Source of the DNA: Epiperipatus broadwayi
Lineage: Eukaryota; Animalia; Onychophora
Assembly (NCBI GenBank): GCA_028023455.1
Contig: JAQFVV010000010.1
Span: 6,076,001-6,140,000, forward strand
Direction of reading: 5' to 3'
DNA length: 64,000 bases
Numbering within the stretch: position 1 is the first letter of the stretch; each line of letters opens with the position of its first letter. Below the pieces are notes generated by a model, which saw only the letters and a list, made by a program, of their open reading frames with translations, ran no database searches and was not told the origin of the DNA. The translations under genes and the position numbers were made by a program. Positions 5,751 to 62,445 of the stretch are shown here, piece after piece.

Positions 5751-6046
5751 GATAACCCTGCTGAAAATTCAAATAATATTTTACATAATTTGGATATCAC
5801 TACCAAAGAAAATAAACAAATCTTCAAAATAGCTTAAAGATATAACAATACAAAGTATTTAAGATAATGATAGCATTTGTAATCCAAAAAAAAAAACAAT
5901 ATTACACATATTAATTTTTTTTAAACATGTAAAGTTTTACATATTATTTTTTGAAAGGTGAAATTAATGAACAGTAGCAATTTTATTTTTTGCAATATTT
6001 GAAGAGTAACTTCTGAATTTTTAAAATTTAAACATTCTAAACATGT

Positions 6047-6278
6047 TAACCCACTAAACATCACATGATCACTATTTCTTATGCTAGCACATTACTGTTA
6101 TTAAAACAGGCAAAACTCTCCATACAGTAGTATAACTCAGTGCCAACCAGAAACTAGTCTAGGGATATTGGATGAGTAGGCACTAGATAGGGATTTTATG
6201 CAAAAGCCTTCTGGCATCCATTGATTACTCTGGTTGGCATTGAGTGGCACTACTGTATGGAGAGTTTTGCTTGTTTTA
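6047..6278. mobile_element. Truncated copy of the hammerhead repeat family
   Basis: Tail motif ccactaaacatcacatgatcac, short inverted arm, GAAACTAGTC-TAGGGATATTGG half-ribozyme; 13-bp TSD attct(a/t)aacatgt. Confidence 0.8.
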
Positions 6279-22689: not shown

Positions 22690-23720
22690 CAGCATACTAT
22701 TTTATTCATATCTTTTATGCCACCTATTGGAAGCTTTAGTAACTAATAGATGATGGATGATAGTGCTTATTAAATTCAGTGCTGTCCTATCCAATATCCC
22801 CAGAATAGCTTCAAGTTTATGACTTTATCAGTGAGGAACTTTGGGTCTTGGAATAATGTAGTTGGATTTTTAGAATCTAATACATCTTCCTTCTTGTGAC
22901 CATCATTTATATTGTTTTTTAATTTTCAAGTTATCAGTTCAAATTGAAAAACATATATTTTCAATCTAAGCCAACTTACTTATATAGTCATATAGATCTG
23001 AAACTAGTTAAATATCTATATACTATGGTGTCCTTAGTTTTTAAACAACTATAAGCACTTTTATCCTGTGACCAGAATTGATATAAAACTAACAAAATAT
23101 ATCTTTATCACATGACTTCAATATACTCATTGCTGTTTCAGCAGCATACTTTTTTCTTCACACCACTATCCTACCTACTGTAAGCTTTAGAAACTAATAC
23201 ATGCCTGATGATAGTTAATAAATCCTTATTCAGTGCATGGAGGAATGAAAAAAAAAGCATGCTGCAGAAACAGTAACGAGTAAGGTAAAAGTCATGTAAT
23301 AATCATGCAACATTTATTGGTTTTATATCAATTCTGGCACAGGTTAAAGATGAATTATTGTTGTTAAAAAACTAAAGATGCCATAATATTTAAATACCGA
23401 ACTGATTTTAGATCTACGACTATTCAGCTTAGATTGAAAAACATTTGTTTTTCAATTTAAACTGATAATTTGATTGTTAAAAAGAGAAATAAATGACGGT
23501 TGCTAAAAGGAAGTTACATCAGATTCTAAAGATCCAAAATGCATTGTTTCAAAATTCAAAGCTCCTCAGTAATAAAAACTAGTCTGGGGATATTAAATAG
23601 GAGATCGCTAGTTTAGATTTATTATGTACTATCAACTGTCATCTATTAGTTACAAAAATTTACAGCAGTTGACCAAGAGGGTGTGAAGTATGCTGCCGAA
23701 CCTCAATGACTATGCTGAAG
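22690..23720. mobile_element. Old, diverged palindromic copy of the hammerhead repeat family
   Basis: Degenerate hammerheads at 22791-22845 (-) and ~23556-23595 (+); body motifs ttttcaatctaagc / gcttagattgaaaa in inverted orientation. Boundaries approximate. Confidence 0.6.
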
Positions 23721-32229: not shown

Positions 32230-33180
32230 TCAGCAATATTTTCAATTATTATCAATATATGCAGGATGAAGGTCTCTCCAAGTTCAATCAATCTTGTCCG
32301 ATATCTAGCTTCTCTTCTCCACATAACACCGGCACTTTTCCTTATTTTAATCCATCACTGTGGTCTCTTTCTAAGTATTTTACAATCTCTTGAAATCCAG
32401 TTTAAGATTTCAACTGTCATCTATTTATTATCATCTCTTCTAGCAATATGTCCAGCCCAACTCCACTTCAGTCTCTTAATTCTTTCAACAATGTCAGTAA
32501 CGCATTTGTTCTCTCATCCATGTATTTCGTTTTAGATCTCTTCTTGTTATTCTTAACATGCATCTCTCCATACTTCCTTGAGTGATCTGAAGTCTCTGTA
32601 TTGCTTTTTTGTTAAATGTCCAAGTCTCAGATCTATAAATAAGAACTGGTAAAACACATCTATTAAAAAAACCTTCATTTCAAATATCACATGATCACTA
32701 TCTCATACTAGCACTACTATATGGAGAGTTTTGCATTTTCAAATACTTAGATATATTTCCTTATAATATTATTTCTACCAAAAGCACTCCAAGTTTTAAT
32801 TCTATGATTAATTTCATCCACTATGTTTCCATCTGTAGTAATAATATGACCAGAGTATTTGTAATAGTTAATTTCTAACTCACTATTACAATCTTTATTT
32901 TCTTCTTTTGAGAAAATCCATTGAATATTACTTTAGTCTTTTTAACATAACTCTTTTATTCTCTTCTATAACTTTCCTTACTAGTTTACAATTATACTTT
33001 CTTATGTCATTATCAACTTTTTCATACCATTTTTATAAAATCTGAGATATTCAATCCTTCTTAATGTGTAATTTCTATATAGTTTCATCTAAATATATAT
33101 AAATCTTATAGAGAGTAAACCCAGCTTTTAATATAAAAATAAAATTTACTTTTTCAGAAATATCACTTTCAATAATTAAA
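32230..33180 (-). mobile_element. RTE LINE 3' fragment, same family as 29000-29990
   Basis: CVLPVL..SETWT.NKKAIQRLQ...MERCML...KW.WAGHIARRDD on minus; nucleotide similarity to 29270-29440. Confidence 0.75.
32687..32734. mobile_element. Minimal (48-bp) copy of the hammerhead repeat family inside an RTE fragment
   Basis: tcacatgatcactatctcatactag joined to cactactatatggagagttttgc; flanks atttcaaata / attttcaaata. Confidence 0.65.
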
Positions 33181-39479: not shown

Positions 39480-40720
39480 ATGACAGATTTTTCAATTATC
39501 TATCAGTTCTACACAAGATATATAGTAAACCATACTGCAATTTCCACAAATAATTCTATATACAATTCCTTTTTTATATTTCATATCATCTCTTAATTTA
39601 TATTTACCTATTCATTTGTCAAAATTTTTACTATTATCCATTTTATGTTAATGCTTTTATCCATATAATTTTTATTTTTTAATAATATATGATAAATTTT
39701 AGAGAAATATGAAAGATTTATCCATGTTTTTATTATTCTTAGATCTGCTATTATTATTAATAATACAATTATTATTAACATTTGAAATTAGGTAATTTTA
39801 AGTCAATCAACATCACATGATCACCATTTCATATCCTTGCTCATAACTGTTATCAAAACAGGCAAAACTCTTTATACGTATTGCACAAGCCTTATGGCAT
39901 CCATTGATTACTCTGGTTTGCACTGAGTGGCAATAGTATAGGGAGCTTTGCCTGTTTTGTATTAGGTAGTTTATAATTAAAAAATATATTTTCAATACTC
40001 TTAGGGTTATGCCCATATTTTTTTGTATAATTTAATAAACTGTTCCTTTTGTAAAGTAGCTATACTTTTATCTGTATTACATCTATAATTTTTATGTTTA
40101 AAATTTTTAATAACTACCACCTTTTGTATCCATGCTTGTGAATCTATAGAAATTATTTTTCTTAATTTATCTTCTTTAATGAAATGTTTTAATGTATTTC
40201 TTTTATCATTATCTATAACATCAAACTCCATTTTTGTAGATTTAATATTATATATATATATATATTATTATTATTAAATTCTCTATACATATCGTTCATA
40301 GCTCTTTTGTTACCAATTATTAAGATATCATCCATATATCTAAAATTACATATTATTTTTTGATTTATTATTCTTTTTTTAATTATTTTAATTTCCAATT
40401 CATTAATAAATATTGATGACCTTAACTCACTAACTGCACAAATCATTACCTATCCTTTATGTATACTCCAATATTCATTATTGTGTTTAAAGTATAAACT
40501 ATTATGTGTTAATTTTAAATCTTCTTTTATAATATGTATTGTATTTATATCACCAATGTACATAGACAATTTCTGTATTAATATCTCATATACTTTTAAT
40601 TCTTGGAATATACATTTTCTGACATCCATTGTAAAATACCTTGGTTTCTATTGAGTTGTATCTTATTTAATTTACTTATGACAGAGTTTGTATTTTTAAT
40701 GCAAAATTAAAGTTTTATAT
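39480..40720 (-). mobile_element. Decayed Penelope-like element (RT + GIY-YIG endonuclease)
   Basis: Minus-strand peptides YFTMDVRK, LKLTHNSLYFKHNNEYWSIHKG, SIFINELEIKII, FRYMDDILIIG, followed by GIVYRIYCGNCSMVY (39534-39570); the RT then GIY-YIG order is diagnostic of PLEs. Many stops and frameshifts. Confidence 0.75.
39801..39960. mobile_element. Truncated copy of the hammerhead repeat family inside the Penelope remnant
   Basis: Family tail, short inverted arm and 3' body; flanks attaggtaattt / attaggtagttt. Confidence 0.75.
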
Positions 40721-41361: not shown

Positions 41362-41505
41362 TAACCATTAAACATCACATAATCACCATTTTCCATGCTC
41401 TCAAATCCAAAGTACTTCACTGATGAAAACCATACGCTAAAAACTAGTCTATTGGATAACTAGACAATAGATAGGAATTTTAGGAATAAACCATCTTGTC
41501 TCTGT
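41362..41505 (+). mobile_element. Diverged copy of the hammerhead repeat family
   Basis: Tail motif plus CTGATGA (41420-41426)...AAAACTAGTC; 8-bp TSD caaagata. Confidence 0.65.
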
Positions 41506-44119: not shown

Positions 44120-44218
44120 GCAATTCAAAATACAGCAAAACTCTCCATATAGTATTTTGAATTGTTTATAACAATTATTGTGCTAGTATGAGATAGTGAT
44201 CATGTGATGTTTAGTGGT
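44120..44218. mobile_element. Short copy of the hammerhead repeat family (ends only)
   Basis: Inverted arm start gcaaaactctccata plus tail ...gtgatcatgtgatgtttagtggt; perfect 13-bp TSD aaaattgtaataa. Confidence 0.8.
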
Positions 44219-46086: not shown

Positions 46087-46530
46087 ACATCAACATAATC
46101 ACCATTTCTTATGCTTGCTCAAGCTGTTAAAGCAGGCAAAACTCTCCATACTGTAGTACCACTCAGTGCAAGCCAGAATAATCAATGGATGCAAGGTTTG
46201 TGCATAAAATCCCTATCTAGTGCCTACTCATCCAAAATCCCCAGACTAGTTCCTAGCTTATAGCTATCATATTATTATGTTATCAATATCATTATGTTTT
46301 CAATTTTAAACTCATAGTTACTGGAAGGTTGCATTAAATCCTAAGATCTAGGTGCAGTGCTCTCAGATTCAAGACTCCTCACTGATGAAAGTCATAAGCT
46401 AGAAGCTAGTTTGGGGATACTGGATAAGTAGGCACTAGATAGAGATTTTATGCACAAACCTTTTTGCATCCATTGATTACTCTGGCTTGCATTGAGTGGT
46501 ACTACTGCATGGAGAGTCTTGCCTGTTTTA
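46087..46530. mobile_element. Two-armed copy of the hammerhead repeat family
   Basis: Inverted arms; hammerhead CTGATGA at 46382-46388 (+) and a partial one at ~46232-46270 (-); 11-bp TSD aaaaaatctta. Confidence 0.82.
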
Positions 46531-48215
46531 AAAAAATCTTATCCCAGATATAATTCATAAAATTATTGATCAGATTTCTAACATAGGAATATTTTAATAT
46601 TTATTTACTCCACTCTTTAATTTCTTAATCTCCAAGTTTGGATTTCATTGAATCCGCCACAGTATATGCTTCTTCATTCCCCTAAGTTAGGCTAACTTTT
46701 TGAATAATAGTAACAAATTTCTATCAGGATATAATTAAGATAGATTTAGCTTCATATCATTTATTAGGCTCTATTAATTTCAAGACAAAATTACATTTGA
46801 AAGGAAGTTTGAATTATAAAAGTATGTTTTAGCTCTATCATTTTTAATACAGGTAGTTATTGAATTGGATCATTTATCATAGTTATATTCTGATTTCTAG
46901 CTTTGTGTTGGCACTACATTTCAAGCACTCTATAATAACATGACAGAAGAAATCTATCATTGAATCCATGCAAGAAAGAATCTGAATTGATGTCATTCAT
47001 GGACAACCTCCGAAAGAAAGGGACTCTAGCTAAATATATGAATAAATCAAATGAATGATACCAAAAAAAGAGACTATTATATAGTCTCTCTGATCAAAAA
47101 TTGTTTTTTTCTCAGAATGTTTCTGTTTTCTTAGTTAATCCCATAATTACAAAACTTCAATTAAGTACAATTTATCCAAACCACTTCGAACACTTTTAGC
47201 AAAACTCTTAATATTATTTGTACATATATGCATACACCTAAAAGTTTTCAAAGTGATTTGGAGAAAATGTATTTATATAAGATATTACAGCAAAATAAAG
47301 AAAAGGGTGATTTTGGTAATATTTCTGAAAAAACTTCAATTACATATAATTAATTATAGTATTTTTACAAATTAACAAGTATATTCCTTTTTTATTTAAC
47401 TAAATATAAAATGAATTTCTAATAAATTATCCGCCAATTATTTTTGAACAAAATAAACTAAACTTTTTACATTTCTTTATAAATTATTGAAATCCATATC
47501 TTCATTTTGATTTTTGAAAATATGGATTTACTTTTATCTCTTTTATCCACAAATATAAATTTTTTATATATAAAATCTTCCTAAGTTATAAAAATAAAAA
47601 TTACATCAATATATAAATCCCCTAGGACCTTAAATAAAATTATTAAATATAAACTTTACTGAAATTTATCGTTACTAATTTTATTTATTTGAAATTAATA
47701 TATTTTATTTAATATTTATTAAATTGTATAATAATGGATAATCATTATCAGTAAGATAATGTTTGATCTGATTTTGCTATGTTTTATCTACTTTAAATTT
47801 TACTCTAGTAAACTCTTTCTGATTTTGAGTGAGTACATAAATGGATGAGCTCATAACATAATAAAGCTAATAAATTTACTTTCTGAGCAAGACCAATATA
47901 TATATAAATATTAAAGCAGCTTTATAGAGAAGTAATTGTGTGTTTTTTCTTTTATTAGTATATATATCAATAAATTTCTAATATAGATTACATGGAAAAG
48001 TAAAAACAAACTATTACTAACAATATTAAGTGATCATTCTACAAATGCCCTTTGATAGACTCTTTGGAGACATCGAACCTGCTTTCAGCATATCATTAAA
48101 TTAAATATATATATTGTATGTATAAAAAATGAATCGTTATTATTTTTAAAGAAACAGAAAATTTTGATTTATCAATATAACTATCATCTTAAAAAAATAT
48201 ATTGTGAAATCCTAC

Positions 48216-48646: not shown

Positions 48647-48934
48647 ACACAGAAACTAAACTCTCCATACATACAGTAGTACTCCTCAATGCAAACCAGA
48701 ATAATCAATGGACGCAAGAAGGTTTAGGCTCCTCACTAATGAAAGCCACAAGTTAGAAACTAGTCTGGAGATATTGGATGAGTAGGCACTAGATAGAGAT
48801 TTTATGCACTAATCTTCTTGCATCTATCAATTACTCTGGCTTGCACTGACTGCTGCTACTGTATGGAGTTTAGTCTCTGTGCAAACAGCTTGTGTAAGCA
48901 TAAAGAATGGTGATCATATGATGTTTAGTGGTTT
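48647..48934 (+). mobile_element. Copy of the hammerhead repeat family with tail on the right
   Basis: CTAATGA aagccacaagtta GAAACTAGTC TGGAGATATTGG at 48736-48777; flanks taatttactga duplicated. Confidence 0.8.
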
Positions 48935-51559
48935 AATTTACTGAATCACACTATCTACGATATTAAATACAAATACATGAATATTAAAATCTTAAGAGTG
49001 TTGAAACTTTCAAACTTTTCATTTATATGGTATAAGACATATGTAATTCAATCTCTTAATAATGAAACAGTCAGAAACTAATAACAATTATTATTCAGAG
49101 TCCATCGATTACTATTGCTTATGTAAATGAGTTCTAAAATTGTGTAGCAGAATGAATTAACGTAAATGTAATTAAAATTTTTATACAAACAATTATATAG
49201 TCAAATGCAAGTAAAGTACTTTTTTCAGTTTTATTGAAAATGCTTGTTTGATGGTGAACTGTGAAGAATGATGATTTTTGGAATCCTTTTAATATATTTT
49301 TAAACATTATAGGTCTATGATGCAATAAATTTTTTAAAAAGATTTTTTTAAGACATAAAAGTTTCATTCTAAGGAAATACAATTATTCAAGTTTTATTAG
49401 TATGCTTTAAATATTGTAGTAGTTATCCTGAACAGAATCCTTATTGACAGCAAAAAGAATGACAGGTTTATTATTCTATTCTGAATCTGTCAATAGATAA
49501 AATGATTAAGGCAATTAACACATTTTTAGCTTTAAGATAATTTGATGAAAATTATTATGAAAGTGGAATTTTTCTCTCATTTATGTGGGAGTTTTAAAAA
49601 AAATAGTGGAATTTGTCTCTCATTTATGTGAGAGTTTGAAGAGAACAATATGTCACGCGTTAGCCTAACAATGGAGAGTACATTAAACTTTCAAGAAGTA
49701 TTACATTTACAGTTATTTGCAGTAAAAAATAATTTTGACTATTAAGGATTATAATGCTGAAATGTGGTTTGATTACACACAAACACAATTTTTTCTTTAG
49801 TATTGTCCAATTATAAGCCTTTTGAGCTGACAGCTAATGGCTCACTGGATTGTTAAATCAAGGTTAATTGAAGAAAACATAGCAAACATCTACTTAACAT
49901 GATTTCTGATTATCCATAAGTGCCAATAAAGTAATAGAATCATAGTAGTTTGTCATCTTACTTTGGATAAAAAATTGTTATTTAAAACTGTAATAATCTA
50001 AATTCTGGTAATTATAAATGGGCAAAAAATGCTAGTAAAAAGAAATTTGAATATCATTCTATTCAACATTATTTGACTTTAAATCATGTTAGCATACAGT
50101 ATCCATTTCTTCAAGTTTCTTCTAGATGCCAGATTTATACAAGTGAATTGTGCATAATCATATTACTTGCAATTCTCACTCCACTTCTGTGAGATAGCTT
50201 TGTGCCACCAAATTCAGTGCAAAGTATAAGAATAGATTACAGGGTTGTTGTTATTTTTTTAAAAAAAAAAAAAACTTTAACAGATATTATAATATACTTG
50301 CTGTTCTGATTTGATTCTATAAAGTTTTTCACAATCGTATTAAATTATATAGAATGTAGTAGAGGATCTCAGAAAGAAAGCCATTCCATTTCCAAGATCT
50401 TGACATAATTCTATACATCCTATTATATAGATATGATCAGTTCTTTTACCAATAATTATCTTTCATGTTATTATAAATCATAATCAGAAAGCCTATGGCA
50501 GAAAAATCACTTGATAATGGTTCAGTAATTATAAATGTCTAACAAAGAATAGTTTTAGCAAAATGTAATTGTTTACTTTATCAATAATATATATATATCA
50601 ATTTAAAGATAAATCATGATTTTAATCCCATCATCATAATTCAACATATTCACCTATTATCAATCTACTGGAACATGAAGATCTTTACAAGTTTAATTAA
50701 GTTTATTTCATTTATAGCTCAAGCATCTTTTGCAATTCAATTATGCATTTTTTAGTAGAAGTATTGGGTGAGAGTGGACGTAAAGACTTGTTTTCCAGAT
50801 TCTCAACATCACCATTTCATGTAACAGTACAGAATTGTAGAGTACACTGATGAAGTGATTTGCTTATCTAAGAGATGGTAGATGTTCACATAATAATCAA
50901 ATTATTTATACTTCATGAATTACAGTCCTTCCATGATAGTACTACTATCTGGACTTCCAGACAAATTGGTTTCACAAGAGATTTAAAGCTTACAACTCAA
51001 CCCTTTTTAGACCATAGTCAGGATATCTAATATAGTACTAGGAATGATTCTAGCATTAATAACAATGTAGTCACATACGTACATATGTAGATTCCATAAA
51101 TAAATATAGAATGCAATGCAAAGATCAAAGAATCAAATATAAATTAAATTAATAATAATCTATATTTTTTGGTTAACATAATAAATAACAATGTGACGTT
51201 TTATTACAATATAAATTACATTTAAATACATGATTAAATGAAATGATGTACATCAATCTAGACATTGTCTGTTCTAAAATTAAATACAGAATAAATTTTT
51301 TATATTCATTTTTGATAGATTACTATGATGTACTGGCTTGATGCATTTCAATTTTATACCAATACTTTATACAAAAAAAAAAAAAAAATTAAAAATTCAT
51401 ATGTAACAAAATACTTTTGTGCAATAATTGAAATATATATTTTTTATAACTTTAAACAAAAAGTCAAAAATAATACTCTCCTCAGATTCTAAATATGAGT
51501 ATACATATAAAACTAGCTATTATTATTATTATTTTCTTTATACTTCAAAATTTCTTGTT

Positions 51560-55700: not shown

Positions 55701-55719
55701 CTCTCTCCAAACAGCAGTG

Positions 55720-56060
55720 CCAACTAGTGCTAGCCATGGTAATTAATGAATACTAGAAGGTTTGTGCATCAGAATCTCTATCTAATGCTACTCATCCAAT
55801 ATCCAGACTAGTTTATAACTTGTGGCTTTCATTAGCGAAGAGGCTTGGATCTGAGAGCACTGCACCTAATCTTCTCCAGAAGCCATCTTTTTTTCTATTT
55901 CGCTAAATATAAAGTCATACAGATCTGAACTTAACTTCAGTGTCTATAAATTTTAGCAAGTTTGGTTTTTTAATAGCTAGTCACTATCATCCTTTAGCCA
56001 GATATGGTATTAAACCACTAACACGTCACATGACCACCATTTCTTATGTTTACATAATTG
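55720..56060 (-). mobile_element. Near-full monomer of the hammerhead repeat family in Tango1 intron 1
   Basis: Minus strand: tail motif, spacer, body, CTAATGA aagccacaagtta TAAACTAGTC TGGATATTGG. Boundaries approximate. Confidence 0.75.
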
Positions 56061-58622: not shown

Positions 58623-61093
58623 AACTTAATGCATCAGTTCGGATTCTATGAGGTAGATATAAAAAATTATTGGCTTGTTATTTTATTATTTACTGTGATA
58701 ATCATAAAAGATACCAATAAGTCTAACACTGCTGTTCCTATCAATAAATGATGCGATTATCCTAAATGAATTTGCTCTTTGTTTGCAATGCATTCTAAAT
58801 GAGTTATGGTGGAATCCTTATATATTTTATTCCAAGGCTCACACACATATATCATATTGCAGAATATTATTTACTGTATTGGAAAGTGTATAATGCTTTT
58901 CAACCTGCTTACATAGATATTTATGGTTTTTATGTGTATAGTATACCTGAATAAATTAGGATTATAGCATAAAAAAATGATATTTAGCTATAAATGGAAA
59001 TTTGAAAAAACACATTGTGGTTGTATCCATTTATTCATTAAAAAACTAAAAAATTAGTCTGTGTTTTTATTTTTTTAAATAAAATGAGCAATGAAATATT
59101 CTTTAAAAACCCTCTGGATAATACTCTTCATTTAACGACCTTTTTTTCTATGAAAACAAAATAGTATTATTATCGGCAATTTGGTTATTTTGGTGTTTTA
59201 ACATCTGTATTGACTTTGGAATCTATGTGTTACCCCTATTTAAGAAAGATACTTTACAAATTTTCTAAATTTCATAAAGCTAGTTTTATCCTTGGATTTT
59301 TATTACATGAAATACTGCGCTTATCAAAAAGATTTAGAAGGATTATGTTTCATATTCAATTCAGGAGAAATATGTATGCAGTATATGATTTCAATGTAAT
59401 GCAAAGAAACATTATTAATAAATGTGCAATGCAGTGCTTCAGGATGAAAAATGACTGCTACCACTTTGTAAAATTGATTAAATTTACAAGTATTTAATGT
59501 TTTATTTAATTTTTTTGTTGTTGTTGTTGTTGTTTATTTACATTGGTAGTGTATTATTAAAATAGTGTATATCATTGTATATAGCAGTAATGATAACATT
59601 CAGAGTATTAAACCATACTTAGCATCACAAAATCATTGACTAGATATTATGTGATAAATTAATATAATGTATAAGTGGTTATAGGCAAACACAAATATAT
59701 TAAATGGAAAAAGTATCTGATGAGCATAAAATCTTTCACATCAAGAATTCACTCTGGTTTGTCTATAATTAAATAAATTCATAAATGTAATATTATTGGA
59801 TTAAATAAAGTTTTAAAATATAACATTTATATATAATGCATAACATTATATGGCTATGAGAATAGAATCATAAATATTTCATACTGATCAAGCATTAATG
59901 TGACATCTTTTATCGTAAAATCAATTCAAATTTAGGAAATAGTATCTTGTCTTAAATTGCAGAACTATATGTGTGGTAATAAAAAATAATGAATACTCTT
60001 TATAGTTTTTAGAAAAAACTAAACTGGCAGGCATGCCTTAAGTAGGGTCTTGAAGAATTTAATCCAGGTTATCCAAGTAGCTGGCTAATATGAGTTGAAT
60101 TAACGTCAATTACTCTGGTGAATATGTCTGGGCTTACTACTTAACAGATCTTATCATTACAGTGCATAATTGTTTGAACTAAAGTTTAAGAATGCAATAG
60201 AACTAACATTTTTGGTCCTGAACTTCTGATTATAATGGAAAAGGATAAATTTAATTTGAATAATCAACATGAAGACAAAAATACAATTGATTATGCAGCT
60301 GAGCTCCAGAGATTATCTTAGGCCTATGATTTTAAGCATTTCTGGAGGAGGCATTCAGAGATTGTTTTACATATGGTATGCGGGATACAAATTATGGATA
60401 CCAATACAACATTTAATTCAAACACCTTTCAAGCAAGATATGGCTAACAGCTATTATTTTTATTTAAAATATCAGTCCAAAATATATTGATGAGCTCGAT
60501 AAAAACATAATGAAAGAACAAGTGTCTGTTTAGTTCTGATTGCAAATAAATATTATGTAAAATCACAAATAAATAAAAAACTTGCTATTGTTATAAAAGA
60601 TCTCACACAGCCAGTCAGTGTTCACATATAACAATGTGTTGTTTATTCCAATGAAAGTGATGCATTGTAATTGCCTTCATATCAAAAAAGAAATGAGTAA
60701 AACAAAGATGGCAGTTGCTTAACATAGAGCATTCAGAAATGTCATCTTTTAAGATGCAAGTCATTATTAGCAGTATTTTTATAAAAATGTTGATTGATAT
60801 CGGCTCTGATGTTCTTCATTATTTATATTGTGCAAAAATAAAAAGCAAAGGGCAGTATTCCATCTGAAATATAAATTATTAATGACTATCAAAGCAAATT
60901 AAAACTGACAGTCACAAGAGACTAAACACATATAAACCACTAAACATCACATGATCACCATCTCTATACTAGCACATAATTGTTGTAAACAAAGGCAAAA
61001 CTCTCCATACAGTAGTGCCACCCTGTGCCAAACAGAATAATCAATGGATGCCAGAAGGCTTGTGCGTAAAATCTCTATCTAGTGCCTACTCAT

Positions 61094-61148
61094 CCAATAT
61101 CCCCAGACTAATTTCTGGCTTGTGGCCATCATCAATGAGGAGCCTTGG
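61094..61148 (-). ncRNA. Type I hammerhead ribozyme motif (C3U and C15.2U variants)
   Basis: CCAAGGCTCCTCA TTGATGA TGGC-CACAA-GCCA GAAA TTAG TC TGGGGATATTGG; stem I pairs cctca/tgggg and ccaa/ttgg across an internal loop. Confidence 0.75.
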
Positions 61149-61618
61149 ATCTGAGAGCACTGCACCTAGATTTTAGGATCTAATGCAACCTCCAGAAGCC
61201 ACCTTTTAACTCTACTTTACTACAAAACTATGAGAATGAAATTGGAAAACACAATAATATTTTCAATCTAAGCTCAGTAGCTTATATAGTCATATGGGTC
61301 TGAACTCAATTCAGCACCCATACATTTTGGTGTCTTTGGCTAGTATAGAGATGGTGATCATGTGATGTTTAGTGGTTTAACACCAATCCTGCCTAATAGG
61401 ATAGTGGTGGCTATGGTTTTTTAAGAGCCAAAGACACCAAAATGTATGGGTGCTGAATTGAGTTCAGACCCATATGACTATATAAGCTACTGAGCTTAGA
61501 TTGAAAATATTATTGTGTTTTCAATTTCATTCTCATAGTCTTGTAGTAAAGTAGAGTTAAAAGGTGGCTGGTGGAGGGTTGCATTAGATCCTAAGATCTA
61601 GATGCAGTGCTTCCAAAT

Positions 61619-61673
61619 CTAAGGCTCTTCACTGATGGTGGCCACAAGCCAGAAACTAGTCTGGGGATATTGG
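61619..61673 (+). ncRNA. Type I hammerhead ribozyme motif (A9G variant)
   Basis: CTAAGGCTCTTCA CTGATGG TGGC-CACAA-GCCA GAAA CTAG TC TGGGGATATTGG; predicted cleavage after GTC 61659-61661. Confidence 0.75.
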
Positions 61674-62152
61674 ATGAGTAGGCACTAGATAGGGATTTTA
61701 TGCACAAGCCTTCTGGCATCCATTGATTACTCTGTTTGGCACAGGGTGGCACTACTGTATGGCAAGTTTTGCCTTTGTTTAAACACATAATTGCCATTGT
61801 TAGTAGCATAGCAACTTAATGAGCTGTAAGTGGTTCAAGCCCCTAGGTTATACTTTAGTGAATGTGAATCAATTCTCTAATGTTTATATGAAGTAAAATT
61901 GGGATTGTTATCAAGATACATTTGTTTGTACATATATATAGTCTTTTAGCTGTTGAATATCACTCTTTCTGTTAAAAACTAATGTTTTCGAAGAGTCAAA
62001 CAGATTACATGCTAATGGCGCCATTGAATCATTACTTCAGGGTGAATGAGATATACTTATTGTACTTATTAGAAAAAAATGTATATGTGGAGATTCATTA
62101 ACTAAGACTTGCTCAATAATTACCCTTATCTTTAAATAGACATTTACTTTTC

Positions 62153-62445
62153 ACAGAGGCTAAACTCTTCATACAGTAGTGCCACCAATGCAAGCCAGAG
62201 TAATCATGGATGCAAGAAGGTTTGTGCATAAAATCTCTGGTGCCTACTCATTCATTATCCCCAGCTTGTGGCTTTCATCAATGAGGAGCTAGAAACTAGT
62301 CTGGATATTGGATAAGGAGGCACTAGATAGAGACTTCATGCATGAACCTTGCATCCATTGATTACTTTGGCTTACACTGGTGGTACTACTGTATGGAGAG
62401 TTTAGCCTCTGAGTAAACAGCTTGTGTAAGCATAAGAAAGCAGAC
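62153..62445. mobile_element. Two-armed, internally deleted copy of the hammerhead repeat family
   Basis: cagaggctaaactc...gagtttagcctctg inverted ends; split ribozyme halves (TTGATGA on -, GAAACTAGTC on +). Confidence 0.75.

Follow-up and report, generated by a model that had tools for sequence, protein, structure and literature searches.

Positions 60933-61781 of a 64,000-nucleotide stretch of the genome of the onychophoran Epiperipatus broadwayi (the whole stretch is referred to below as the window) raise two questions, namely what kind of element lies there and by what route it was inserted. A preliminary description had read the locus as a non-coding hammerhead element that was copied from a tandem or circular 455-nt template and inserted in the manner of a Penelope-like element (PLE). 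As to the kind of element, this reading is supported by the present analysis. The locus is very probably an old and inert copy of a high-copy, non-coding animal non-LTR retrozyme, inserted in trans by a PLE enzyme with reverse transcriptase (RT) and GIY-YIG activities.

Anatomy of the insertion in the window

The locus holds a single insertion composed of two head-to-head arms of one 455-457-nt unit, both of them 5'-truncated (Table 1). In a repeat search of the window, 60986-61341 and 61426-61781 appeared as an inverted repeat with 93-98% complementarity, which bears out the earlier proposal of two divergent copies of one unit arranged as opposing arms. Read in minus strand order, the left arm passes from unit 88-443 through 12 nt, the reverse complement of 60974-60985, into unit 1-41. 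Since this arm crosses the junction between the tail of one unit and the head of the next, the unit length is 455 nt, and the presence of the linker between tail and head implies that the template exceeded one unit. Both points agree with the tandem or circular template of 455-nt units that had been suggested before.

The insertion and the direct repeat around it were also part of the preliminary description, which gave the target-site duplication (TSD) as 9 bp. The repeat is present, but its length can only be stated as 8-10 bp, as two ambiguous bases (TA) belong either to the element end or to the duplication. The two arms are only ~94.6% alike, which places the window copy among the older ones.

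Table 1. Features of the hammerhead element insertion and its flanks, in window coordinates
Feature	Position	Strand	Observation
Target-site duplication, left copy, TAAACACATA	60923..60932	.	Direct repeat; exact 10-bp match between the flanks
One-sided tail, reverse complement of unit 1-41, outer end of left arm	60933..60973	-	100% complementary to 61339-61379 (repeat search)
12-nt linker, unit 444-455, tail joined to head	60974..60985	-	Also found between tandem units at other loci
Left-arm body, unit 88-443, 5'-truncated at the centre	60986..61341	-	94.6% identity to the unit
Left-arm type I hammerhead motif, inactivated by C3->U (TTGATGA) and C15.2->U (ACTAGT to ATTAGT)	61094..61148	-	
Central head-to-head joint, 3 bp of microhomology (GCT)	61339..61341	.	
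Right arm, unit 1-443; its outer end is the short one, without a tail	61339..61781	+	Matched over its full length on many contigs, at 94-96% identity
Type I hammerhead motif of the right arm, inactivated by A9->G (CTGATGG); G-U pairs are retained at two C->U sites in helix I	61619..61673	+	
Target-site duplication, right copy, TAAACACATA; first two bases (TA) are possibly the last two of the element	61780..61789	.	

A high-copy tandem family in the host genome

A search of the host genome (5.6 Gb, ~25% GC) with the unit returned 4,598 candidate matches, the best of which share 94-96% identity and are spread over many contigs. The unit was mapped onto 30 loci, picked as the best matches to the window copy, so that the sample is not random. 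Tandem multimers, for which a genome-wide search had been proposed in the preliminary description, were present at sampled loci as arrays with a period of 455-457 nt (L008, L009, L011, L012, L016, L017, L021, L023 and L024); L009:669-1943 is a natural tandem copy. The tail-to-head junction of the left arm recurs in these arrays, which settles the question of whether it is unique to the window locus. In addition, the family is abundant in assembled contigs from at least four organisms, the RNA status of these contigs being a guess. ARAGORN found no tRNA-like part in the family. Unit positions 316-390 and 1-45 form its conserved blocks.

Units of the same arm are 97.3-99.6% alike and opposite arms are up to 99.8% alike, compared with a between-locus mean of 95.6%. 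Because units within an insertion are far closer to each other than units of different loci, each insertion represents one event that used one template.

Arms of 2-3.7 near-identical units are common. Wherever an arm is longer than one unit, the preceding sequence is another unit, up to 3.7 units, and never coding sequence. This observation bears on the explanation that no independent non-coding family exists and that the arms are what 5' truncation left of an autonomous PLE (solo pseudo-LTRs). Heavily 5'-truncated PLE insertions often consist only of terminal sequence (PMC8557442), and the AUG inside the core CUGAUGA opens a frame of merely 17 codons that might have been left over from a pLTR-ORF junction. 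Against this explanation stand the sequence upstream in the longer arms, which consists of further units, and the finding that none of the 20 PLE loci sampled in the same genome resembles the unit. We therefore regard the remnant explanation as improbable and treat the arms as copies of a non-coding tandem family in its own right.

The hammerhead motif

Each arm in the window carries a type I hammerhead with one or two core substitutions. The canonical core (CUGANGA ... GAAA ... UH, with helix I open) is absent from both window copies and present in the majority of the family. The canonical core that had been derived earlier from the two arms together is identical to the majority form in an alignment of 53 family copies, in which the intact core prevails. 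Likewise, no other form is as frequent in the sampled loci as the intact 55-nt motif, which was counted 20 times (for example, L009:1325-1379 on the plus strand). The 42-nt hammerhead segment that begins with CUGAUGA and finishes with helix I has 4,526 exact copies in the genome, compared with none for its reversed control. Since both of its hammerhead cores are mutated, the window copy is, judged by its sequence, dead.

In the hammerhead layout, helix I consists of 5 bp, an internal loop and 4 bp, helix II of 4 bp, and helix III is the palindrome ACUAGU. A structural descriptor that combined the core with a helix I of at least 4 bp and a helix II of at least 3 bp recovered every intact family copy and assigned 5-6 contiguous pairs to helix I and 4 pairs to helix II. 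When at most one core mismatch was allowed, its hits across the 64 kb of the window were limited to the two arms, and ~120 kb of other, unrelated loci yielded a single doubtful site. A 30-nt core pattern with at most three mismatches matched the window six times, compared with 0.13 matches expected. Covariation support for the helices is thin and amounts to one compensated pair relative to a related family in the window, in which pair 10.2-11.2 has changed from G-C to A-U and pair 10.1-11.1 has been lost.

Helix III comprises an A-U and a C-G pair around a 2-nt loop, a hairpin that the folding model disallows, in agreement with the earlier view that this palindromic stem is unfit to fold in a monomer. 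Because such a loop is forbidden, ACUAGU would pair only between two ribozymes, and the predicted cleavage would need a dimer or the help of a protein. The closing pair of helix II is U10.1-A11.1, while in hammerheads this pair is usually G-C. Recognition by the Rfam hammerhead models, which had been suggested as a check, failed: in a search run without a positive control, neither the gathering score nor a limit of E<=10 brought a match, and a 91-nt slice with an intact copy was missed as well. The likely reasons are the 2-bp helix III with its 2-nt loop and the U-A pair that closes helix II. 'Canonical' metazoan type I hammerheads are described as having a short palindromic helix III and acting as dimers (PMC4209133).

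The RNA monomer, taken from one predicted cleavage site (at GUC) to the next, has a predicted fold of -157.6 kcal/mol (z = -5.5). Such strong self-pairing, like the multi-unit, near-identical arms, fits the retrozyme model with a circular RNA.

Insertion footprint across loci

All 21 complete insertions in the sample have the same plan, with two arms whose 3' ends point outward and a variable central joint between them, and nearly all insertions at the 30 mapped loci are paired arms of this orientation. Arm length ranges from 0.1 to more than 3 tandem units. Every one of the 21 has an arm that stops at unit position 434-453 opposite an arm that continues to position 28-45 of the next unit, leaving a one-sided tail of ~50 nt on exactly one arm. 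Were the two ends chosen independently of each other, the probability of this one-tail pattern in all 21 would be at most 0.5^21. An exact flanking repeat is also present in 21 of 21 cases, with a length of 7-17 bp (median 13) and an A+T content of 85%. The central joints are overlaps of 1-6 bp or contain 0-10 nt of filler, and they fall at a different unit position at each locus. The orientation was also seen in a sample that had not been selected by likeness to the window arm: among the exact hammerhead matches, the first 100 by contig order contained 13 close opposite-strand pairs, and all 13 were oriented (-,+) with their 3' ends outward.

Inverted arms together with a target duplication have a superficial likeness to a fold-back or MITE-like DNA transposon, the arms then being its terminal inverted repeats, or to a satellite spread by duplication at the DNA level. 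Terminal inverted repeats of this kind do not account for arms of unequal length, tandem units inside the arms, or outer ends made asymmetric by a one-sided tail; the TSD length varies between 7 and 17 bp, and the copies are dispersed over many contigs. The DNA transposon reading is largely refuted by the unequal ends and by a central joint that is different at every locus, and we consider origins of this type very unlikely.

The features seen instead are a truncated 5' side, partial tandems, a second copy that is inverted and likewise 5'-truncated, a tail on one end alone, and an AT-rich target. Published PLE insertions are strongly shortened at the 5' side, include partial tandems, lie beside an inverted copy that has lost its own 5' part, and have a short tail on a single side (PMC8557442). 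For a PLE of the anole studied in vitro, both strands of an AT-rich DNA target are cut and extended, and reverse transcription has two neighboring internal start sites, the interval between which corresponds to the tail (PMC11167929).

Penelope-like elements in the same genome

The genome contains more than 10,000 GIY-YIG candidates, some of them in open frames of 800-901 aa. Intact PLE ORFs with RT and GIY-YIG domains are encoded; at L043, for instance, an RVT_1 domain (E 1.3e-11) is followed by a C-terminal GIY-YIG domain (E 1.7e-9). Another PLE copy, at L044, has an inverted copy, a partial tandem and a 22-nt tail, a layout like that of the retrozyme insertions. As the footprint matches published PLE insertions and PLE ORFs are present in the genome, we interpret the element as a non-autonomous passenger of PLEs.

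Mobilization in trans by a PLE RT/GIY-YIG enzyme, as put forward in the preliminary description, has both the footprint and the presence of the enzymes in its favor; the ORF-bearing parent that was also envisaged was not found in the 20 PLE loci sampled. These 20 GIY-YIG/PLE loci, five of them with ORFs of 800-901 aa, were taken from the >10,000 candidates. BLAST, local alignment against shuffles, the canonical hammerhead descriptor and a relaxed minimal descriptor revealed neither a recognizable hammerhead in them nor any significant resemblance to the unit.

Two candidates from this search were rejected. A 34-nt match to the unit beside the PLE at L036 belongs to a neighboring small insertion of a related family, and a hammerhead-like string at L044:6649-6690, at the 3' end of an AT-rich PLE ORF, is faint and does not rise above shuffles.

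Proposed mechanism and form of the template

From the footprint we infer both the identity of the enzyme and priming from two strands. In the proposed sequence of events, the enzyme would make a staggered cut in AT-rich DNA, which would give rise to the duplication of 8-10 bp in the window and a median of 13 bp elsewhere. Reverse transcription would then be primed from both nicked strands on an RNA longer than one unit. On one strand the start would lie at about unit 443-450, and on the other ~50 nt further 3', near position 41 of the next unit, so that the interval between the two starts would become the one-sided tail. The two cDNAs would converge and stop at arbitrary points, producing the 5' truncation, and would be joined, with 1-6 bp of microhomology or a small number of filler nucleotides at the joint, into two arms with their 3' ends outward.

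As to the form of the template, the chances are about even between a circular monomer copied by rolling-circle reverse transcription and an uncleaved linear multimer. In the linear case, a tandem source locus would supply the template as an ordinary multimeric transcript, the hammerhead would be irrelevant to mobility and no circular RNA would be involved. The insertions themselves offer arguments for it, since multi-unit arms hold uncut hammerhead sites and the insertion termini lie 120-175 nt away from the predicted cleavage site. Furthermore, hammerhead mutants of the anole PLE left insertion in vitro unaffected, and unprocessed RNA was the main substrate (PMC11167929). On the other hand, 5' truncation of a linear template should reduce the number of units in each generation, yet arms of several units persist. 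The hammerhead core has also stayed intact in thousands of copies, and the monomer RNA is unusually self-paired, like the retrozyme RNAs that have been shown to be circular in other animals (PMC7229834). Taken together, we give the ordinary linear transcript a probability slightly short of one half.

A more specific account, offered tentatively and in our view rather doubtful, addresses the exactly-one-tail rule and the near-identity of the arms together. A dimeric PLE ribonucleoprotein would prime both strands using two adjacent and mutually exclusive starts on the RNA, which might be a 455-nt circle copied by the rolling-circle mode. If true, rolling-circle copying of such a circle would account for arms of several identical units, and its many natural copies would make the family a record of how PLEs integrate.

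Significance

Taken alone, the window locus is a dead copy of a common repeat; it is of little weight and should be masked. Unless it is masked, the long hairpin formed by its arms produces false microRNA-like matches. The sole Rfam hit in the region, to mir-743 at 61310-61457 (25 bits versus a gathering score of 67), is such a case and was discarded as an artefact of the head-to-head arms.

The preliminary description had left room for an undescribed family. The kind of element has already been described in animals, and the family is a further example of animal non-LTR retrozymes, clean rather than new in kind; a literature search found no text match to its hammerhead sequence. The thousands of young copies preserve a clean footprint with two fixed unequal ends, a variable joint and arms from the same template. 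This anatomy backs the recent proposal that animal retrozymes are mobilized by PLEs, and the copies can serve as a data set on PLE integration.

Comparison with known systems

Animal non-LTR retrozymes are small non-coding tandem units with type I hammerheads, with repeats of 150-450 bp and 'highly self-paired' RNAs of ~170-400 nt (Cervera & de la Pena 2020, PMC7229834). The present family has the features by which they are recognized: a small non-coding tandem unit, a type I hammerhead, a TSD of more than 4 bp, and neither LTR, PBS nor PPT. It also shares with them a GC content below 50%, a predicted self-paired RNA and a copy number in the thousands. It differs in its unit of 455-457 nt, which lies at or just above the published size ranges. 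In a 2026 preprint (bioRxiv 10.64898/2026.07.22.740005), retrozymes are argued to be non-autonomous PLE derivatives on the grounds of co-occurrence and pseudo-LTR phylogeny. The terms 'tail', 'head-to-head' and 'target site' do not occur in that preprint, and its sole 'inverted' stands in a cited MITE title.

The canonical EN+ clades of PLEs (PMC8557442, PMC11167929, PMC4209133) agree with the present family in that their insertions lie in AT-rich targets, contain partial tandems next to an inverted copy with a truncated 5' side, and bear a tail on one end alone; their hammerhead, too, is located upstream of the RT start region. In contrast to PLEs, the family has no ORF, its tail is ~50 nt compared with the published 30-40 bp, and its hammerhead is of the canonical metazoan type, whereas the 'minimal' type is reported for PLE pseudo-LTRs. 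With regard to the PLEs of the host genome, the 20 sampled loci gave no sequence link to the unit.

The hammerhead repeats of the newt satellite, schistosomes and cave crickets (listed in PMC7229834) resemble the family in their architecture. Each unit, a few hundred nucleotides long, has a type I hammerhead with a helix III too short to form in the monomer, for which action as a dimer is expected (PMC4209133). The copies described here are mostly dispersed short insertions with TSDs, as opposed to long satellite arrays.

Related hammerhead families in the window

The window holds at least ten additional insertions from related hammerhead families, with identities to the unit ranging from 64% to 95% (table). 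Several of these are small head-to-head pairs, each with a one-sided tail. Between families, conservation is strongest in the tail (unit 1-45) and in unit 316-390; helix II varies most. An 827-codon open frame also lies in the window; its acidic product is rich in Asn, Asp, Glu and Ser, contains repeats and gave no Pfam match. This frame is probably a large disordered exon from a host gene.

Features in the window and in two loci with Penelope-like element (PLE) frames
Feature	Position	Strand
Related hammerhead-family insertion	6044-6276	
Related hammerhead-family insertion	22789-23594	
Related hammerhead-family insertion	32682-32712	
Related hammerhead-family insertion	39798-39953	
Related hammerhead-family insertion	41363-41496	
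Related hammerhead-family insertion	44182-44218	
Related hammerhead-family insertion	46134-46537	
Related hammerhead-family insertion	48670-48936	
Related hammerhead-family insertion	55707-56044	
Related hammerhead-family insertion	62153-62411	
Open frame, 827 codons	24300-26783	-
AT-rich PLE	L043:4301-7003	
AT-rich PLE	L044:2237-7108	

Composition and truncation ends

The element at 61339-61781 has a G+C content of about 41% (given as 0.41 by Infernal for 61310-61457) compared with 23-29% in the surrounding region, which may reflect RNA-structure constraint or youth. A transcript reading through both head-to-head arms would fold back into a hairpin whose stem spans about 356 bp.

At the central joints of the 30 best-matching loci in the genome (L001-L030), 9 of 49 inner, 5'-truncated arm ends fall within 16 nt (unit 302-317), inside hammerhead helix II and GAAA. 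This cluster does not coincide with the hammerhead cleavage site, located after unit 323; its ends may lie where reverse transcriptase halts at the G+C-rich hairpin. Two of these loci, L006 and L010, are 99.8% identical including their flanks and occupy separate small contigs (C1695 and C1958); they are probably either one sequence assembled twice or the products of a recent segmental duplication.

An AT-rich PLE family

An extremely AT-rich PLE family with frames of 901 and 875 aa was found in two sampled loci (L043 and L044) and is apparently intact. No recognisable hammerhead was found in its non-coding part. The copies stand in tandem, repeating about every 3,135-3,150 nt. The whole protein had no Pfam match; separate domain queries detected both the reverse-transcriptase (RVT_1) and the endonuclease (GIY-YIG) domains, RVT_1 being followed by a C-terminal GIY-YIG.
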